Source: Thalia democratica (taxonomy: Eukaryota). From it: DNA of 64,000 nt. A model generated the notes under the pieces. That model saw nothing but the letters and a program-made list of their open reading frames with translations. It ran no database searches and was not told the DNA's origin. The translations under genes were made by a program, and so were the position numbers. Numbering within the stretch: the stretch's first letter is position 1; every line of letters begins with the position of its first letter. Location of the stretch: assembly GCA_965202585.1 (NCBI GenBank), contig OZ241831.1, positions 14,756,001 through 14,820,000 on the forward strand, given 5' to 3'. Shown piece after piece: positions 566-62,484 of the stretch.

Positions 566-925
566 TTATTTTGAGCTGGTGTACTTGGTAACAGCTTTAG
601 TTCCCTCTGAAACTGCGTGCTTTGACAACTCGCCGGGGAGCAAGAGCCTGACAGCAGTTTGAATTTCGCGGCTGCTCACAGTTGACCTCTTGTTGTAATG
701 AGCCAAACGTGAAGCCTCTGCTGCAATGCGCTCGAAGATGTCGTTGACAAATGAGTTCATGATTCCCATCGCCTTGCTGGAAATTCCGGTGTCGGGGTGC
801 ACTTGCTTCAAAACTTTGTACACGTAGATGCCAAAGCTTTCTTTGTGCCTCCTCCTTCGCTTCTTCTTGCCGTCGACCGGGGTGGTCTTGGCTACTGACT
901 TCTTCGCGCCTTTGGTTGCGGTCAT
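566..925 (-). CDS. H2B: Histone H2B
   Basis: 119 aa, contains [16 protein letters not shown] and [16 protein letters not shown]; intronless; stem-loop downstream. Confidence 0.98.
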
Positions 926-957
926 GATGATGTGTGAACTTCAGTCTCGGCGCCAGC

Positions 958-999
958 TTATATACTGAAAGTTTATGCAAATTAGCATTTCCGTACGCG
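958..999 (-). promoter_or_regulatory. H2B promoter: CGCGTACGG (991-999), octamer CTAATTTGCAT (975-985) and TATA box (958-964)
   Basis: The minus strand reads CGCGTACGG-AAATG-CTAATTTGCAT-AAACTTTCAG-TATATAA, resembling the vertebrate H2B octamer-plus-TATA arrangement; present in all units. Confidence 0.8.
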
Positions 1000-1054
1000 A
1001 ACGACAGCCTCTCTCATTTTATGATTCTCTCGTTTGTCGTAAATATTTTTAGGT

Positions 1055-1070
1055 GGTCCTGAAAAGGACC
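1055..1070 (-). terminator. Histone mRNA 3' stem-loop of H2A (all units)
   Basis: Minus strand GGTCCT-TTTC-AGGACC, 14 nt after the stop. Confidence 0.95.
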
Positions 1071-1084
1071 TGGTTTGTTTTAAC

Positions 1085-1465
1085 TTAGGCTGATTTTTTT
1101 GAAGCGGTCTTCTTGGGCAATAATACTGCCTGGATGTTTGGAAGAACACCTCCTTGAGCAATAGTGACGCCGCCGAGAAGTTTGTTCAACTCTTCGTCGT
1201 TGCGGATAGCTAGTTGCAAATGGCGGGGAATGATCCTGCTTTTCTTGTTGTCACGAGCAGCGTTACCGGCAAGCTCGAGCACTTCTGCGCTCAAATACTC
1301 GAGAACGGCAGCCAGATAAACTGGAGCACCAGCTCCGACTCTTTGGCTGTAGTTGCCAGTGCGCAACAGGCGGTGCACGCGACCGACTGGAAACTGCAGT
1401 CCTGCACGAGAAGACCTGCTCTTCGGCTTAGATTTGAGTTTTGATCCTTTACCACGTCCCGACAT
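1085..1465 (-). CDS. H2A: Histone H2A (start trimmed to MSGRGK; 126 aa)
   Basis: [34 protein letters not shown]; the ORF-track start at 1501 lies upstream of the canonical start; no C-terminal SQ motif. Confidence 0.98.
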
Positions 1466-1508
1466 CTTGTTGTTCGAATGATTGTGCCAAGATGCTCGCA
1501 CAGCTCTG

Positions 1509-1554
1509 TATAAAACTCAAACCTAACCGCGTCGAACGAACAACTAATTTGCAT
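1509..1554 (-). promoter_or_regulatory. H2A promoter: octamer ATGCAAATTAG (1544-1554), CGCG core (1528-1531), weak TATA-like TTTATA (1509-1514)
   Basis: The 11-mer is identical to those upstream of H4, H3 and (inverted) H2B; the TATA call is weak. Confidence 0.7.
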
Positions 1555-1628
1555 ATGTCGTAGCTGCTCTTTAATCTTGTCAAAATGTTTGTTCAGCAGT
1601 GTTGAAGAAATTTGATTTTGAAATGGGT

Positions 1629-1644
1629 GGTCCTAAAAAGGACC
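1629..1644 (-). terminator. Histone mRNA 3' stem-loop of H4 (all units)
   Basis: Minus strand GGTCCT-TTTT-AGGACC followed by ACCCA, 15 nt after the stop. Confidence 0.95.
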
Positions 1645-1659
1645 GAGTTTGCTAGATGT

Positions 1660-2004
<345 letters not shown>

Positions 2005-2005
2005 T

Positions 2006-2056
2006 TATTTATAAGCTGTTACGGACGCGTACGGTTACTACTAAACTAATTTGCAT
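2006..2056 (-). promoter_or_regulatory. H4 promoter: octamer (2046-2056), plus-strand CGCGTACGG (2026-2034), TATAAATA (2006-2013)
   Basis: Motifs read directly from the sequence; TATA lies about 35 nt upstream of the ATG. Confidence 0.8.
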
Positions 2057-2129
2057 ACTCAGAAAAGTCTCTAACTTACATTCTTTCGTTTGGTTTATTT
2101 TTTCTCACTATCAAACAAAGTTTAAAAGT

Positions 2130-2145
2130 GGCCCTGAAAAGGACC
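2130..2145 (-). terminator. Histone mRNA 3' stem-loop of H3 (all units)
   Basis: Minus strand GGTCCT-TTTC-AGGGCC (one U-G wobble), 15 nt after the stop. Confidence 0.95.
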
Positions 2146-2160
2146 GGTTTTAGCTAATGC

Positions 2161-2697
<537 letters not shown>

Positions 2698-2725
2698 TCA
2701 TGTTTTGTTAATATTTTGATTGAGT

Positions 2726-2741
2726 GGTCCTGAAAAGGACC
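2726..2741 (-). terminator. Histone mRNA 3' stem-loop of H1 (all units)
   Basis: Minus strand GGTCCT-TTTC-AGGACC, 17 nt after the stop. Confidence 0.95.
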
Positions 2742-2758
2742 TTGGGTAAAAGAACAAC

Positions 2759-3346
2759 TTATTTTTTACAGCTCTTCTTGGTACTTGCCTTCTTAGATGC
2801 TTTTTTGGCTACCGGCTTCTTCTTGGTTACTTTCTTCTTCTTGCTTGCAGCTTTTTTAGATGCTGCTTTCTTAGGAGCACACTTTTTAGCAGGTCGCTTT
2901 TTGGCTGCTGGTTTTTTCGCTGCCTTCTTGGGAGCACACTTCTTTACTCGTTTCTTTGCTGCGGCCTTCTTTACTGCTGGCTTTTTAGCTACTTTTTTTG
3001 TCCTCTTCTTGGGACCAGCAGCTGGCATTGGAGCAAGCTTGAACGAGCCGGAAGCGCCTTTTCCAGTAGTCTGGAGAAAAGAACCTTTGGTCACGCCGCT
3101 GGTAAGTGCTCTCTTCAAGTGAGAATTAGAAGCTGAGAGGTCAAGCTTGTAGGTGTCCGCGATATATTTTTGTATCTTCTGGCGGGATGTACCTTTTCGT
3201 TCCTTCATTGCTCCCAGGGCAGAGCTAATCATCTCCCTGTAAGTCGGGTGTTCTGCCTTCTTGGCGCTTGGTCTCTTGGAAGACCTGGCCTTGGCTGCGG
3301 CCGCCGCCGCTGCTACTGCTGGTGCTGCTACTGCTGTGGTAGACAT
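2759..3346 (-). CDS. H1: Linker histone H1
   Basis: 195 aa; globular domain (HPTYREMI...GTSRQKIQKYI...LQTTGKGASGSFKL) plus a Lys/Ala/Pro-rich tail; stem-loop downstream. Confidence 0.95.
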   Translation of the reverse strand: MSTTAVAAPAVAAAAAAAKARSSKRPSAKKAEHPTYREMISSALGAMKERKGTSRQKIQKYIADTYKLDLSASNSHLKRALTSGVTKGSFLQTTGKGASGSFKLAPMPAAGPKKRTKKVAKKPAVKKAAAKKRVKKCAPKKAAKKPAAKKRPAKKCAPKKAASKKAASKKKKVTKKKPVAKKASKKASTKKSCKK

Positions 3347-5003
3347 TTTGTATGTATTTTAAAGCAACCGAAACAATACTTTTAGTAGTTACTGACTGTG
3401 ACGAATTGACTGTTGAGCAGTTTTACTTTGTGAAGTACCTTTTACTGATTAATACGAGCATTATCATGTGAGTTTAAAGCGCATATGCTCATAAAAGCAT
3501 AGTTATTTTTTTACGAACGTCAAAAACATTCCAGTGACAAAGAAACCAGACTTAGCCTGGTCGGAAACAGAGTTTTTTTTAAAGCTTAGCTTTAAAGGTC
3601 CAGAAAAACAGTCTAAAAGTTACAGCACACCTCTGCATTTAATAATATAAACCTCAAATGAAACAAAATACATTACTACACATCCGGTTTAGTTTTCTTC
3701 AGCTGCAAACTTAAAACTGTAAGATTTTAGACAAGCACAAGTATTTTTTCCACTTCAAGCTTAAGTTAAGTTTTATTATTTTAATTTCATTCGGTTTTGT
3801 CAATTGTAAAACCCATTAAGTATGTTTAACTTGATTACAACTTTAACTGTGCTGGTTAGTAAAAAGTAATTCATAAACAAACACAAGTATTTAATTTATG
3901 ATACTTTACAAGTTATCATTACTTTAAGTATACTTATATTCAAAATGGCAGTACTAAACCACATAAAAAAACTTAAGTTCATAAGTTTTGAATTTGTTCT
4001 TCCACATACTAGTAACTTCAAAAATGTTCTGAACAGTAGCCATACAAAACTTGTTAAAAAGCTAGAAACTAATGTTTAACTTGTTATATAAAACAGTCCC
4101 AACTAGTTACTAGTATTTCACAGTTAGAAAAATTTGAAACAACTTTTTAAAACTATTACACAGTTGTTTTGATTTTTTAACAACGTTTTATTTGTTATAC
4201 TCGAAGCTGAACTAAGAACTTTTTCTTTGTAGATTTCATGAAAAGAAAGCGAACAAATGGATTTGATCGTAACTTTCCAAAACAAGACGAAATAACTTGC
4301 ACTTAAATGAATATCAGTACTGTTCACTTATGTTCAAAGAAAAGGACCGAAATTTCAATATGAAGTTTAAAAGAGTTGCTTATTTTGAGACGAAGAACTT
4401 TACTTAAAAAAAGAGGTTAGGCTAATTTTAAAAGTAACAAAAGTACAGTTCAAAAATGACTGCATAATGATAGAAGTGTTTATGTTTACTAAGTGAAGAT
4501 TTGTTTAAATAAACTTTAATTGATTTACTGCTTAAAGTAGTTTCTAAGTGTAATAAAAACTAGATTCATTACAATGTTCTGCACAATTTAGACAGTTGAC
4601 TAAATGTTTTGCTGTGGTATATTTTAAAAAAGGTTGTTAAATCAACTCTAACTTGATATAAATGTAATTTCAAAATGTATTCTTTATTCTCAGGTGTTTT
4701 GAGCACTTCTGTTGTAACAACAGCATTTAAATTTCTAACATGTTAACAATTAGCTAATGTGTTTGTTTGATTTTTGTGTCTTTTCCTTTTAAAACAGGGT
4801 ATTTACTTATTTGAAAACTGTACGTTGCTTTTGCACTCGTACTATCATAGCTGAACAGTTTTACGAAGCTTACTTTGAAGCAAATAAAAAAAAAATAAGT
4901 AAAGGCAAGAAAAACTTAAATTATTTGTTAGTTAGAACAAAGTTAGCTCTAAACATAAGAAACACTTAAGCAAATAAGCTACAAGTTTCAGACAGTTCAT
5001 TGG

Positions 5004-5010
5004 TTTATAA
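5004..5010 (+). promoter_or_regulatory. TATA-like element at -29 to -23 of the 5S gene (all units)
   Basis: TTTATAA at the position typical of 5S upstream elements; C at position -1. Confidence 0.45.
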
Positions 5011-5032
5011 CAACTTTTTATCGTTTTCGAAC

Positions 5033-5156
5033 GCCTACGACCATACCACACTGAACACACCCCATCTCGTCCGATCTGGGAAGTTAAAAAAGTGTCGGGC
5101 TTAAAGGTTAGTACTTAGATGGGTGACCGCTTGGGAATACCGCGTGCCGTAGGCTT
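5033..5156 (+). rRNA. 5S rRNA: 5S rRNA gene, atypical variant (4 nt longer than canonical; functionality uncertain)
   Basis: GCCTACGACCATACC...CTCGTCCGATCT...GGTTAGTACTTAGATGGGTGACCGC...GGGAATACC...GTAGGCTT aligns with metazoan 5S over its full length. Confidence 0.88.
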
Positions 5157-5163
5157 TTATTTT
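5155..5163 (+). terminator. Pol III terminator T-runs after 5S (TTTTATTTT; all units)
   Basis: Two T4 tracts immediately after the 5S 3' end. Confidence 0.7.
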
Positions 5164-5409
5164 CAAGCACTTATTTGTTGGATTTATTCTTCATACTTAT
5201 TATGAAAGTTTCTAGTTTATCTTAAACATTTTTCAATAATAAATGACACACTAACTAGACTGTCATTTAGTTGTAGACTTATTTTGTCTGTTGCTTTCAT
5301 TTTGCTATTTATATAAAAGCCATAACTTTATTTCTTAAAAGCGTTTCGTTCTGCTCTAGACTTTTAACAAATATAACTTGAAATAAACAGTTGCAGTAGT
5401 TTTTAGTTA

Positions 5410-8160
5410 TCAAGTTGTCTCATACACAGTCTTCAATAAAGTTACAAAGCTGTTTACTTCTTTTCCTTTGCATAATGTTTCAGCTATTGGTTTTTTTACG
5501 CGTTGATGTTTTATGTTAAAAATCCATAAGCAACTAAGTTTAATAAAACAAGTCTAAGATTTGTAAAAAAAAAATTCAACTTTGCTATTCATGACAGTTG
5601 TACTGAAATTGAATGCTTTTTGGTCGTTTTTTTTCTTTAGAACAATCACTGTTGTTTACATTTATTTATTTTTGAAAATACATTTTGATAAGCATGATCA
5701 GTATAATTTTCATGAATAAACCTCTACTGTTCAAGTATTTTTTAAAATAATACGAAATTTATTAAAACTAACTGTTTTATTTTCATTCCATAATGAAATT
5801 ACTTTTTATAGTGACGTAGAACAAGTTTTAAAAATAAAGTTTAGTATTTATTAAATTAAAAAAAAAGTCTACGAAGTAAGCATAATTGAGAATTTTTTTT
5901 TTGTCTAAATAAAGAAGTTAACAAGAAAAAGCCTTTGGACAACACGTTTAAGTTAGTTGAAGCTTTTTATGAAACATCAAATTACAACTAGTTAACAAAA
6001 CTTATTCCACGATTTAGGCAATACTTTCAAAACATAACTAGCTCTCTTATTAAAAGTTGCTTAGAATGTCCAGTAAAAGTACAAAGGCAATAGTAAGTAT
6101 GCATATCTAGGTGACAAAAGAAAAGACAGAAAAAATATTATTTAGAAGTAAAATGTGTCATTCAACTAGCTCTAACTCTTACTTTTGATCTTTTACCACC
6201 ACAAAGTTGGTTGAGTTGCACATTTTTGTTGTTTAGTTAAAGCTTGTTTAACACTGCTTAGTAGACTTTAAAGCTGGTTAAATAAGCTGGTTGTCCTGAT
6301 TACATTAGATTAACTTGATAAAGCTATAAGCAATGCTAGATCAACTAAAAGATGTAAGCTTTTTAAAGTTATAGATTCGAAATGTTCTTTTTCGTTCATG
6401 TTGTGATGCATATATGTTGTTTTTTGTTTATGTATTTATGAGTTGTAATGCATGTTTTAAATGTGTTTTAGTTAAAGTTATTTTCTGAAACGATACAACA
6501 TAAATTAGACCCAAAGCTAAACTAATTTTCAACTTGATAAATCTGTGAACAATTTGAGTTCAATAAAAAGCTTTGTAAAAAGAATTCGGTTGTAATACAT
6601 GATGGTTGTTGTACTGAAATTGCAGTTTTGTTGATTTTTTTATTTTGGTTTGAACAGCTTCTGTTGTTAATTGTATTTTAAACTGTTTTACTTAGTTTGA
6701 GTTGCATTGTAATAAAAAGAAATAATAAATTTTAGAAACTACTGGTTTATTAGATTGTAATTGTTAATATCCAAAGTTAAGTTTGTTTTATTATAATTTA
6801 ATGTATTATTTTCATTTAAAATCTAATACTTTTTACAGTGACGTAGAACAGTATTTTTTAAATAAACTAAATACTTTTTCAATTTTACAAAAAGAAGTAT
6901 ACAAAATAAGCATAACGGGAATAAGTTTTGTTTAAAGAAAGAAGTTTACAAGAAAATCTTATGGACACAAAAATCAAGTTAGTTGAAGCTTTCTGCGAAA
7001 CGTATATTTATTTGTAATGTAACAGACTTAAGCAATGGTTTTTAAATACAACTAGCTCCCTCCTCAAAAGTAGTTTAAAATGTCATGTAAGAGAACAAAA
7101 ACAATTGTAAATACAAGTATGTGACAAAAAGTTAAAACACAAAAGTATAAGTTAGAAGTAAACTGTTTTATACAAACATTCTAACTCACCTTTTACCAGC
7201 ACAAAAAACATTAAGTTTGGTTCGTTTTTGTCGTCTAGTTAGAGCTTGTTTAATGCTGCTTAGTGGACATTGATATCTGGTTGAATCAGTTGGTGGTCCT
7301 TATCACTTTAGACTTATAACAGAAATGACTATAGACTGTAAAAGTCGTTTTAAGTCATCAAGTTGTCTCACATATAGTTGTAACAAGTAATACAAATGAG
7401 TGGTGACAAGCTGTTACTTCTTTTCCTTTCAGCTTAAAAATTGAGTTCTTTCATGTATTCGACTAATTAAGCAATCAAAAACAAACTAAATAGATGTCAG
7501 CTTTGTAAAATAAAAGTTTTAATGATAAGCTTTCATCAACTATTTCAGCTATTTTTGTTTTGGTAAATCGCGTACTTGTTTATAGTGTTGTTTTTCTTTG
7601 AACAATCGATGTTGTTTACATTTATGTATTTTAATGTATGATTTTTAAATTACTATGCATGTTTTTAATCGTGTTTTAGTTGTAATTAAACTATATTTTT
7701 TGTGAAACAAATATTGTTTGTTGTTAACAATTGAAAACATACTTTGTTGATAAACCAAAGTAAGTTTTATTCTTATTACTATTTAAGTGTACTATTTTCA
7801 TTGAAAAATATAAATAGTTTTTAAAGTGACGTAGCGTAACTTTTTTTAATAAGTTAAAAAACAAATAATTATTGAATGTTTAAGAAAAGTGCACAAAGTA
7901 AGAACGAATAAGATAGAGTTCTTAGAAAAAAAAAGATATCAAGAAGAAAAAGACATCCAAGTTAGTTAATTATGTTAAGCATTCAATTACAGTAGTTGTT
8001 ACATCAAGTTGTCTAACACCTAGTCTAAACAAGTAACTTTACCATGAAAATAATAAAACAAGCATTTTTTAACCGTGTTTAAGCTAATGAGTTGGTTTGT
8101 ATCATAGGGTGATGTTTTGGCTTGAAATGATATCTTAAATAAGCTAAATAGATGTCAGCC
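5410..8160. repeat. Diverged ~1-kb internal triplication in the spacer (copies at about 5410-6370, 6370-7350 and 7358-8160; all units)
   Basis: Collinear shared blocks: AGTGACGTAG at 5810/6837/7825; GTTGTACTGAAATTG at 5597/6608; AAGTTAGTT at about 5948/6977/7960; GCTTGTTTAA..CTGCTTAGT at about 6242/7244; TCAAGTTGTCTCA at 5410/7358. Boundaries approximate. Confidence 0.8.
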
Positions 8161-8757
8161 TTGTAGGTGGGAATACTTAAATGTGTTTGAAATTCACATT
8201 TGTTATCTTTTGTTCTGAACTTTTATTTCTATTTATATACTTATAACTTTTTAAAACATTTTACATGGTTTTAACTGCATTTAAGTTGATAAAAAGAAGA
8301 CGTTTAAAAGTTAAACCTTTGTTGTGTTGCTGATAATCAACAACAACAACTTAAAAATGTAACAAAAACTAAGGTTTTTTTTGGTATAAGTTAAGTATAC
8401 GTTACTGTATTATTTTTTTTAAACACTTATTTACTGAATGTTTTAACAGAAATTCAACAAATGAACAAGAAGTTGTATAGAAAAAAAAAAGTTCACGGAC
8501 AACGTATTGAAGTTAGTTAAATCCTTTTTTACATATACTACTGTTTTTTCAAATTAGACTTGAGCAATGGTAACCATAAGATTAAAACTTGAAAGTACGA
8601 CAAATTTTAAATCAAACAACTAAAGTGTTTGATCTTTTAATTCTTATAACAACCAGTTTGTTTGTACAATTATCAATTTGTGGCTTGTACTTTAAGTAGA
8701 TATCAATAGCCGGTTTTGTTCAAATGGTGGTCCTAAAAAGGACCGGTTGTTGAGCAT

Positions 8758-9117
8758 TTATTTTGAGCTGGTGTACTTGGTAACAGCTTTAGTTCCCTCT
8801 GAAACTGCGTGCTTTGACAACTCGCCGGGGAGCAAGAGCCTGACAGCAGTTTGAATTTCGCGGCTGCTCACAGTTGACCTCTTGTTGTAATGAGCCAAAC
8901 GTGAAGCCTCTGCTGCAATGCGCTCGAAGATGTCGTTGACAAATGAGTTCATGATTCCCATCGCCTTGCTGGAAATTCCGGTGTCGGGGTGCACTTGCTT
9001 CAAAACTTTGTACACGTAGATGCCAAAGCTTTCTTTGTGCCTCCTCCTTCGCTTCTTCTTGCCGTCGACCGGGGTGGTCTTGGCTACTGACTTCTTCGCG
9101 CCTTTGGTTGCGGTCAT
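8758..9117 (-). CDS. H2B: Histone H2B (unit 2)
   Basis: Protein identical to unit 1. Confidence 0.98.
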
Positions 9118-13224: not shown

Positions 13225-13348
13225 GCCTACGACCATACCACACTGAACACACCCCATCTCGTCCGATCTGGGAAGTTAAAAAAGTGTCGGGCTTAAAGGT
13301 TAGTACTTAGATGGGTGACCGCTTGGGAATACCGCGTGCCGTAGGCTT
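13225..13348 (+). rRNA. 5S rRNA: 5S rRNA variant (unit 2)
   Basis: Same sequence as unit 1. Confidence 0.88.
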
Positions 13349-21415: not shown

Positions 21416-21539
21416 GCCTACGACCATACCACACTGAACACACCCCATCTCGTCCGATCTGGGAAGTTAAAAAAGTGTCGGGCTTAAAGGTTAGTACTTA
21501 GATGGGTGACCGCTTGGGAATACCGCGTGCCGTAGGCTT
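21416..21539 (+). rRNA. 5S rRNA: 5S rRNA variant (unit 3)
   Basis: Same sequence as unit 1. Confidence 0.88.
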
Positions 21540-29607: not shown

Positions 29608-29731
29608 GCCTACGACCATACCACACTGAACACACCCCATCTCGTCCGATCTGGGAAGTTAAAAAAGTGTCGGGCTTAAAGGTTAGTACTTAGATGGGTG
29701 ACCGCTTGGGAATACCGCGTGCCGTAGGCTT
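29608..29731 (+). rRNA. 5S rRNA: 5S rRNA variant (unit 4)
   Basis: Same sequence as unit 1. Confidence 0.88.
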
Positions 29732-37794: not shown

Positions 37795-37918
37795 GCCTAC
37801 GACCATACCACACTGAACACACCCCATCTCGTCCGATCTGGGAAGTTAAAAAAGTGTCGGGCTTAAAGGTTAGTACTTAGATGGGTGACCGCTTGGGAAT
37901 ACCGCGTGCCGTAGGCTT
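37795..37918 (+). rRNA. 5S rRNA: 5S rRNA variant (unit 5)
   Basis: Same sequence as unit 1. Confidence 0.88.
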
Positions 37919-45983: not shown

Positions 45984-46107
45984 GCCTACGACCATACCAC
46001 ACTGAACACACCCCATCTCGTCCGATCTGGGAAGTTAAAAAAGTGTCGGGCTTAAAGGTTAGTACTTAGATGGGTGACCGCTTGGGAATACCGCGTGCCG
46101 TAGGCTT
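45984..46107 (+). rRNA. 5S rRNA: 5S rRNA variant (unit 6)
   Basis: Same sequence as unit 1. Confidence 0.88.
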
Positions 46108-54170: not shown

Positions 54171-54294
54171 GCCTACGACCATACCACACTGAACACACCC
54201 CATCTCGTCCGATCTGGGAAGTTAAAAAAGTGTCGGGCTTAAAGGTTAGTACTTAGATGGGTGACCGCTTGGGAATACCGCGTGCCGTAGGCTT
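54171..54294 (+). rRNA. 5S rRNA: 5S rRNA variant (unit 7)
   Basis: Same sequence as unit 1. Confidence 0.88.
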
Positions 54295-62360: not shown

Positions 62361-62484
62361 GCCTACGACCATACCACACTGAACACACCCCATCTCGTCC
62401 GATCTGGGAAGTTAAAAAAGTGTCGGGCTTAAAGGTTAGTACTTAGATGGGTGACCGCTTGGGAATACCGCGTGCCGTAGGCTT
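62361..62484 (+). rRNA. 5S rRNA: 5S rRNA variant (unit 8)
   Basis: Same sequence as unit 1. Confidence 0.88.

Follow-up and report, generated by a model that had tools for sequence, protein, structure and literature searches.

A homogenised 5S rRNA gene copy with two internal lesions in tandem histone repeats, probably a pseudogene relic

The oocyte 5S DNA of Xenopus laevis reportedly contains a pseudogene, attributed to Jacq, Miller and Brownlee (1977), which is said to be a truncated duplicate that adjoins the functional gene in a repeat made up of 5S DNA only. Linkage of 5S to histone genes is described from several animals. Histone-5S repeats are found in Artemia, Mytilus, Asellus, Hydractinia and Potamopyrgus (PMC5011920, PMC13525598, PMC4106214, PMC8382920), and the linked 5S of Hydractinia is reported as transcribed (PMC5011920). 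How 5S genes that sit within other multigene families evolve in concert is the subject of Drouin and de Sa 1995, as represented in PMC13525598 and PMC4106214. No description of histone-5S linkage in tunicates was found in the papers searched, and the canonical string from box A to the intermediate element gave no literature text match.

The locus presented here resembles the histone-linked cases of Artemia, Mytilus, Asellus, Hydractinia and Potamopyrgus in having a single 5S in a multi-kb tandem unit of the histone quartet or quintet, present in high copy number. Unlike the linked gene of Hydractinia, the linked copy is lesioned and represents a small minority of the 5S genes. We argue below that it is probably a homogenised pseudogene, the relic of a histone-linked 5S gene that once functioned.

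The histone unit and its 5S-like gene

The window, a 64-kb stretch of DNA, contains eight tandem units of 8187–8192 nt (about 8.19 kb each). Every unit carries the five replication-type histone genes in the order H2B, H2A, H4, H3 and H1 on the minus strand, and one 5S-like gene on the plus strand about 1.7 kb upstream of H1. The ORFs of the quintet in unit 1 occupy nt 566–3346 (H2B 566–925, H2A 1085–1465, H4 1660–1971, H3 2161–2571 and H1 2759–3346). A histone 3′ stem-loop (RF00032, 22–33 bits) lies just downstream of each of the five genes. Besides these stem-loops and the 5S, the unit gave no hit to any further RNA family in a permissive Rfam scan.

The canonical histones are unusually divergent; H3 has LLLRKLPF, H2B has TVSSREIQ, and H2A is likewise divergent. 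In the contig collection 186 blocks list this exact H3 protein, and the matches listed are all from environmental, mostly marine, metagenomes, which points to an animal group abundant in ocean plankton samples.

The 5S-like gene of unit 1 is the 123-nt sequence of nt 5033–5155. It matches RF00001 over model positions 1–120 with 84.1 bits (cmscan), well above the gathering score of 38; the intact genes of relatives score 111.7–112.1 bits. Seven further copies on the plus strand, at nt 13225–13347, 21416–21538, 29608–29730, 37795–37917, 45984–46106, 54171–54293 and 62361–62483, are identical to it, so that one 5S-like gene is found in 8 of the 8 units, as the earlier note on this DNA had stated, at a spacing of about 8190 nt. 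The identity of the eight copies includes 100 nt of upstream flank. However, zero differences among the eight copies are uninformative on selection, since the units are about 99.8% identical throughout and vary at no more than 21 columns of an alignment of about 8.4 kb. At this rate a 123-nt stretch should contain about 0.3 variable sites, and within-window conservation was therefore rejected as a sign of selection. The presence of identical lesions in every unit through homogenisation of the whole unit is as expected of a tandemly homogenised pseudogene.

Most of the variable columns cluster at nt 7500–7999 and 8500–8999, where 11 of the 12 such columns of the 2.2-kb spacer part fall. Separately, nt 5769–6311 and nt 6794–7320 both align to nt 5936–6471 of the related contig L001 and to overlapping parts of contig L010. 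This common counterpart indicates that the long spacer holds an internal, diverged duplication.

The flanks of the copy have the upstream element and the T-run of a functional 5S gene, and the elements listed in the earlier note can all be read directly on the plus strand. A TATA-like element, TTTATAA, is located at nt 5004–5010 (−29 to −23), a C occupies −1 (nt 5032), and a T4-A-T4 run resembling a Pol III terminator covers nt 5155–5163. The TTATAA is invariant at the same distance in the histone-linked copies of relatives and in canonical genes linked to snRNA genes, and the remaining flank differs.

The earlier note had judged the gene body against human 5S, which is the wrong yardstick. 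The intact 5S of the lineage itself, 119 nt long with about 112 bits, is available from the histone-linked L010 and from two contigs, L021 and L022, that were obtained by a pattern scan of metagenome contigs. Compared with it, the window copy differs by two clusters only, nt 5088–5091 and nt 5101–5105 in unit 1. In the first, alignment to the intact copies shows that the canonical GC is changed to AAA by two substitutions and an extra A. This lesion falls in box A; in helix II, it leaves a G·A non-pair in place of the G-C pair next to loop B. The second consists of a G to T change at nt 5101 and an AAA insertion at nt 5103–5105, giving TTAAA. It lies within the intermediate element, on the 5′ strand of helix V, and cmscan reports a U·C non-pair and a 3-nt insert in this helix. 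Both lesions thus agree with what had been noticed from the letters, namely one nucleotide added and the end pair of helix II lost in box A, and three nucleotides added and helix V damaged downstream of it.

Two other features read from the comparison with human 5S change their meaning with the yardstick. The A8·C mismatch in helix I is present, yet it is the sole non-standard pair of the intact copies as well (the window copy has three) and is therefore a trait of the lineage and no lesion. Likewise, the pairs in helices II, III and IV that had been taken as compensated merely reflect the canonical gene sequence and are present in the intact genes too.

Box C is identical to that of the canonical gene, and box A is moved by 4 nt relative to it. 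In the type 1 Pol III promoters of Xenopus and Drosophila, changes in box A or the intermediate element and altered spacing lower TFIIIA-dependent transcription, and helix V is a main contact of TFIIIA on 5S RNA. Weak Pol III transcription of the lesioned copy may persist, since neither box C nor the terminator nor the TATA-like element upstream is affected.

Abundance and folding of the lesioned and intact forms

The contigs of three public runs, X1 to X3, which come from two studies and bear two organism labels, were mapped on nt 4600–5600 at 80% likeness. The runs look genomic, as the AT-rich spacer is covered throughout. The depths are sums over contigs and give rough copy ratios rather than exact copy numbers. 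The spacer contigs have depths of about 2650 in X1, 1880 in X2 and 1060 in X3, and the 77-nt contig specific for the lesions has 2516, 1772 and 1228, respectively. The summed 5S-like depth in the bin covering the lesions, nt 5076–5109, is 80308, 63338 and 47824, and across the bins of the 5S body it ranges from about 24,000 to 215,000 in the three runs. The lesioned variant accordingly accounts for about 3% of the 5S-like depth in the lesion-covering bin. The 77-nt contig is found without difference in three runs from two studies, which rejects an assembly artefact.

The dominant form is free of the lesions and has a different flank. A 65-nt contig with a depth of 25000 has C at nt 5089, one base fewer at nt 5091 and three fewer at nt 5103, and a loose end shows GGGCGT ahead of GGTTAG. 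The high-depth contigs have A at −4, and loose ends at nt 5158 in X2 and X3 continue into another 3′ flank, starting GCTTTTTGAATTC, which is the flank of the intact 5S on L021 and L022. Apart from the lesions no differing letter within the 5S is reported among the run contigs, indicating that the canonical gene of the genome matches the histone-linked copy outside the lesions. The copy in the window is thus neither the sole nor the main 5S of its genome, the situation in which the earlier note would have regarded it as simply the 5S of the species.

L021 and L022 each carry one 119-nt 5S of 111.7 bits. On L022, which belongs to a close relative, the intact 5S is clustered within nt 1866–4175 with the snRNA genes U5 (nt 3784–3898) and U2 (nt 3980–4175), all on one strand. 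On L021 the 5S and its 3′ flank are as on L022, and no snRNA gene is located within 2.4 kb upstream.

A further variant was observed in X2. An 80-nt contig with a depth of 3402 spans nt 5066–5158 and lacks about 13 nt across nt 5088–5117, including the whole intermediate-element region. It is deeper than the variant carried by the window and probably resides in histone arrays on other chromosomes.

Folding was computed with ViennaRNA, and the energy of the 5S Y-fold was compared with the free minimum. In the intact copies the two are the same fold, at −45.5 kcal/mol for the histone-linked L010 and −43.4 kcal/mol for L021 and L022. The window copy has a Y-fold of −30.2 kcal/mol and a free minimum of −35.3 kcal/mol with an unrelated fold. 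The related, more strongly altered copies show −23.5 against −35.6 kcal/mol (L001) and −9.2 against −26.2 kcal/mol (L002). The consensus pairs of the intact copies mostly have probabilities of 0.5–1.0; outside helix I those of the window copy are at most 0.07. The window copy is not predicted to adopt the five-helix Y-fold, and helices II and V each contain a non-standard pair. These predictions are suggestive of a 5S fold that is no longer thermodynamically favoured, and proteins could still chaperone it.

The abundance and folding data bear on the reading that the copy is a working variant of 5S rRNA, for instance a stage- or tissue-specific one comparable to oocyte versus somatic 5S, which enters ribosomes despite the bulge. 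The score far above the threshold, the intact helices I, III and IV and loops C and E, and the intact promoter flanks and terminator agree with such a variant. However, its fold is 15 kcal/mol weaker than that of the intact copies and is not the minimum, and both lesions are uncompensated; to our knowledge the dual 5S types all retain the fold. The variant also makes up about 3% of the 5S-like depth only, and the lesioned form is not conserved, the linked gene in sister lineages being intact, more broken or absent. Of all the readings considered, this one appears the least probable.

Histone-linked 5S in related arrays

The histone units of relatives are marine metagenome contigs, many of them from Tara Oceans, that share the exact H3 or H2B protein of the window. 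The source of the window is accordingly a marine planktonic animal. H3, H2B and the H1 of L010 found matches in the contig collection; exact look-up of the window's H1 found none. The contigs bear no species labels, and orthology of the array types is judged from the flanks and one gene tree. In the tree of the H1-to-H3 segment the window groups with L010 and L009 (support 91/94), L001–L003 form the sister clade (100/99), and L004–L008 lie outside.

L010 and nine more contigs from different samples have an identical, intact 119-nt 5S of 112.1 bits at the same position and in the same orientation, and the 5′ flank of L010 is clearly homologous to that of the window. The clade to which the window belongs thus had an intact linked 5S not long ago. 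Together with the intact family in the same genome, these contigs provide the intact counterparts expected of a pseudogene. Compared with L021 and L022, L010 displays a double change from U-A to C-G in helix V, which suggests that the linked gene evolved under structural constraint while it was intact.

The L001 clade carries 117-nt copies (L001 nt 273–389 and 8667–8783, L002 nt 4563–4679 and L003 nt 7133–7249) with 73.8 and 61.3 bits. On alignment they have the same TTAAA change in helix V as the window, an intact box A and a 5-nt deletion in loop A. They also bear five to nine uncompensated, helix-breaking substitutions, and the nearby T-run is only T3. In L009 about 430 nt are gone with the entire 5S, and homologous spacer aligns on both sides (L009 nt 4750–4800 versus about nt 5000–5430 of the window). 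No 5S was found by blastn or nhmmer anywhere on the L004–L008 contigs, including the region 1.7–3.1 kb upstream of H1. The occurrence of intact, decayed and deleted states at one spot shows that the linked 5S is evolutionarily expendable in this group. The spacer of L009 is, moreover, about 2.5 kb shorter overall.

Two observations do not follow from simple decay. The TTAAA lesion is common to the window and the L001 clade and absent from L010, which is closer to the window by its flanks and by the H1-to-H3 tree; this discordance does not fit simple decay. In addition, the 5S bodies of the window and L001 are 93% identical (8 mismatches in 117 aligned positions), whereas their flanks are 47% (5′) and 73% (3′) identical (Fisher p about 7e-15 for body versus flanks), and the spacers in general align at 64–75%. 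Plain neutral decay does not predict such a conserved body between two lesioned lineages. The neutral divergence in relatives that the earlier note had named as one mark of a plain pseudogene is therefore not what is found. Four-fold sites of the histone genes, 82–92% identical between the window and L001–L003, are close to the value of the 5S body, but they are an ambiguous neutral yardstick, as codon bias probably constrains them and the spacers are far more diverged.

The discordant lesion and the conserved body are most economically read as the outcome of gene conversion, acting intermittently from the abundant intact family and keeping the body close to canonical. This is consistent with the match of the window copy to its own genome's canonical 5S at positions that vary between species. 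Conversion could also have repaired L010. Alternative readings of these two observations are selection at the DNA level, sorting of several ancestral array types, and recurrent mutation.

Selection at the DNA level would mean that the lesioned copy still binds TFIIIA, TFIIIC or Pol III by way of box C and the upstream TATA and is kept to organise chromatin or to form a boundary between the histone units; alternatively, it would yield a short non-ribosomal RNA. The earlier note had raised such a retained variant; direct support for it did not emerge, but the far higher conservation of the body than of the flanks between the two lesioned lineages speaks for it. So do the unchanged box C, −29 element and terminator, the lesion common to two clades, and run X3, which under the second organism label has the exact double-lesion sequence though its flanks differ by about 2%. 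Gene conversion from the intact family, however, could explain the conserved body equally well, since the copy follows its own genome's canonical 5S at the species-variable positions. The whole element is gone from L009, a member of the same clade, and the L004–L008 contigs have none. The extra changes of L001–L003 are uncompensated and the nearby T4 run is gone, showing that no RNA structure is preserved there. We consider retention of this kind unlikely. In a broader version, the lesioned 5S would be a conserved landing site for Pol III factors, or a gene for a 5S-derived non-ribosomal RNA, in the histone arrays of several related marine species, and the shared change in helix V and the intermediate element would have been selected, uncoupling the copy from ribosome supply; this we regard as quite unlikely.

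Recurrent mutation would require that the copies of the two lesioned lineages still worked until recently and that TTAAA arose twice at a mutational hot spot, the conserved body then recording past purifying selection. Parallel inactivation would explain both why the body is conserved and why the lesion is distributed discordantly. Box A contains TTAAGC, 8 nt upstream of the inserted GCTTAA, and the two are reverse complements, a hint of a fold-back template switch. A fold-back (quasi-palindrome) origin was nevertheless rejected for want of an exact match, because the predicted product is TTAAC rather than TTAAA and the starting stem has 2 bp only. That an identical 5-nt replacement should arise twice is improbable in itself, and the many further changes in the L001 clade argue for an older inactivation there. 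Parallel inactivation has, in our judgement, only a very slim chance of being correct.

Origin of the copy and comparison with known systems

The dominance of intact 5S in the genome, the intact orthologue, the decay and deletion in relatives and the lost fold favour the first of the two origins considered in the earlier note, a once-functional 5S that decayed and was spread by concerted evolution. The course of events can be pictured as follows. The ancestor of the group would have had one working 5S per histone quintet unit, about 1.7–2 kb upstream of H1 on the opposite strand. In the lineage of the window, two small AT-enriching lesions would have been gained in the internal control region, damaging box A and the intermediate element, opening the end of helix II and giving helix V a mismatch and an AAA bulge. 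Unequal exchange and conversion, which would keep the units about 99.8% identical, may then have spread the damaged copy to every unit. Ribosomal 5S RNA would be provided by the far more abundant intact 119-nt family with its different flank, found beside U5 and U2 snRNA genes on the contig of one relative. The histone-linked copy presumably no longer feeds ribosomes, and occasional conversion from the intact family may hold the rest of its body near the canonical sequence.

The locus carries a caution, as fixation of broken 5S copies follows from homogenisation of the array and abundant intact 5S genes exist elsewhere in the genome. The related histone arrays offer a compact natural series, intact, lightly lesioned, heavily lesioned and deleted, for genes that ride in the repeat of another family. 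The series is suited to the study of gain, degradation, perhaps repair by conversion, and loss. The shared lesion and the slowly evolving body could serve to measure gene conversion between dispersed 5S families.

As is said of the Xenopus oocyte 5S pseudogene, the defective copy is present once per tandem unit and uniform through concerted evolution, with intact genes probably supplying the ribosome. Unlike the truncated Xenopus duplicate, the window copy is of full length, has two small lesions, and is the sole 5S in a histone quintet repeat. It also resembles the 5S linkages of Drouin and de Sa, to the extent that these are represented in the papers citing them, in the pattern of repeated gain, homogenisation with the host repeat, and loss, the relatives here being intact, decayed or deleted. 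Beyond the pattern as represented there, the present arrays show one lesion common to two clades, and a body that has remained near-canonical despite its lesions.
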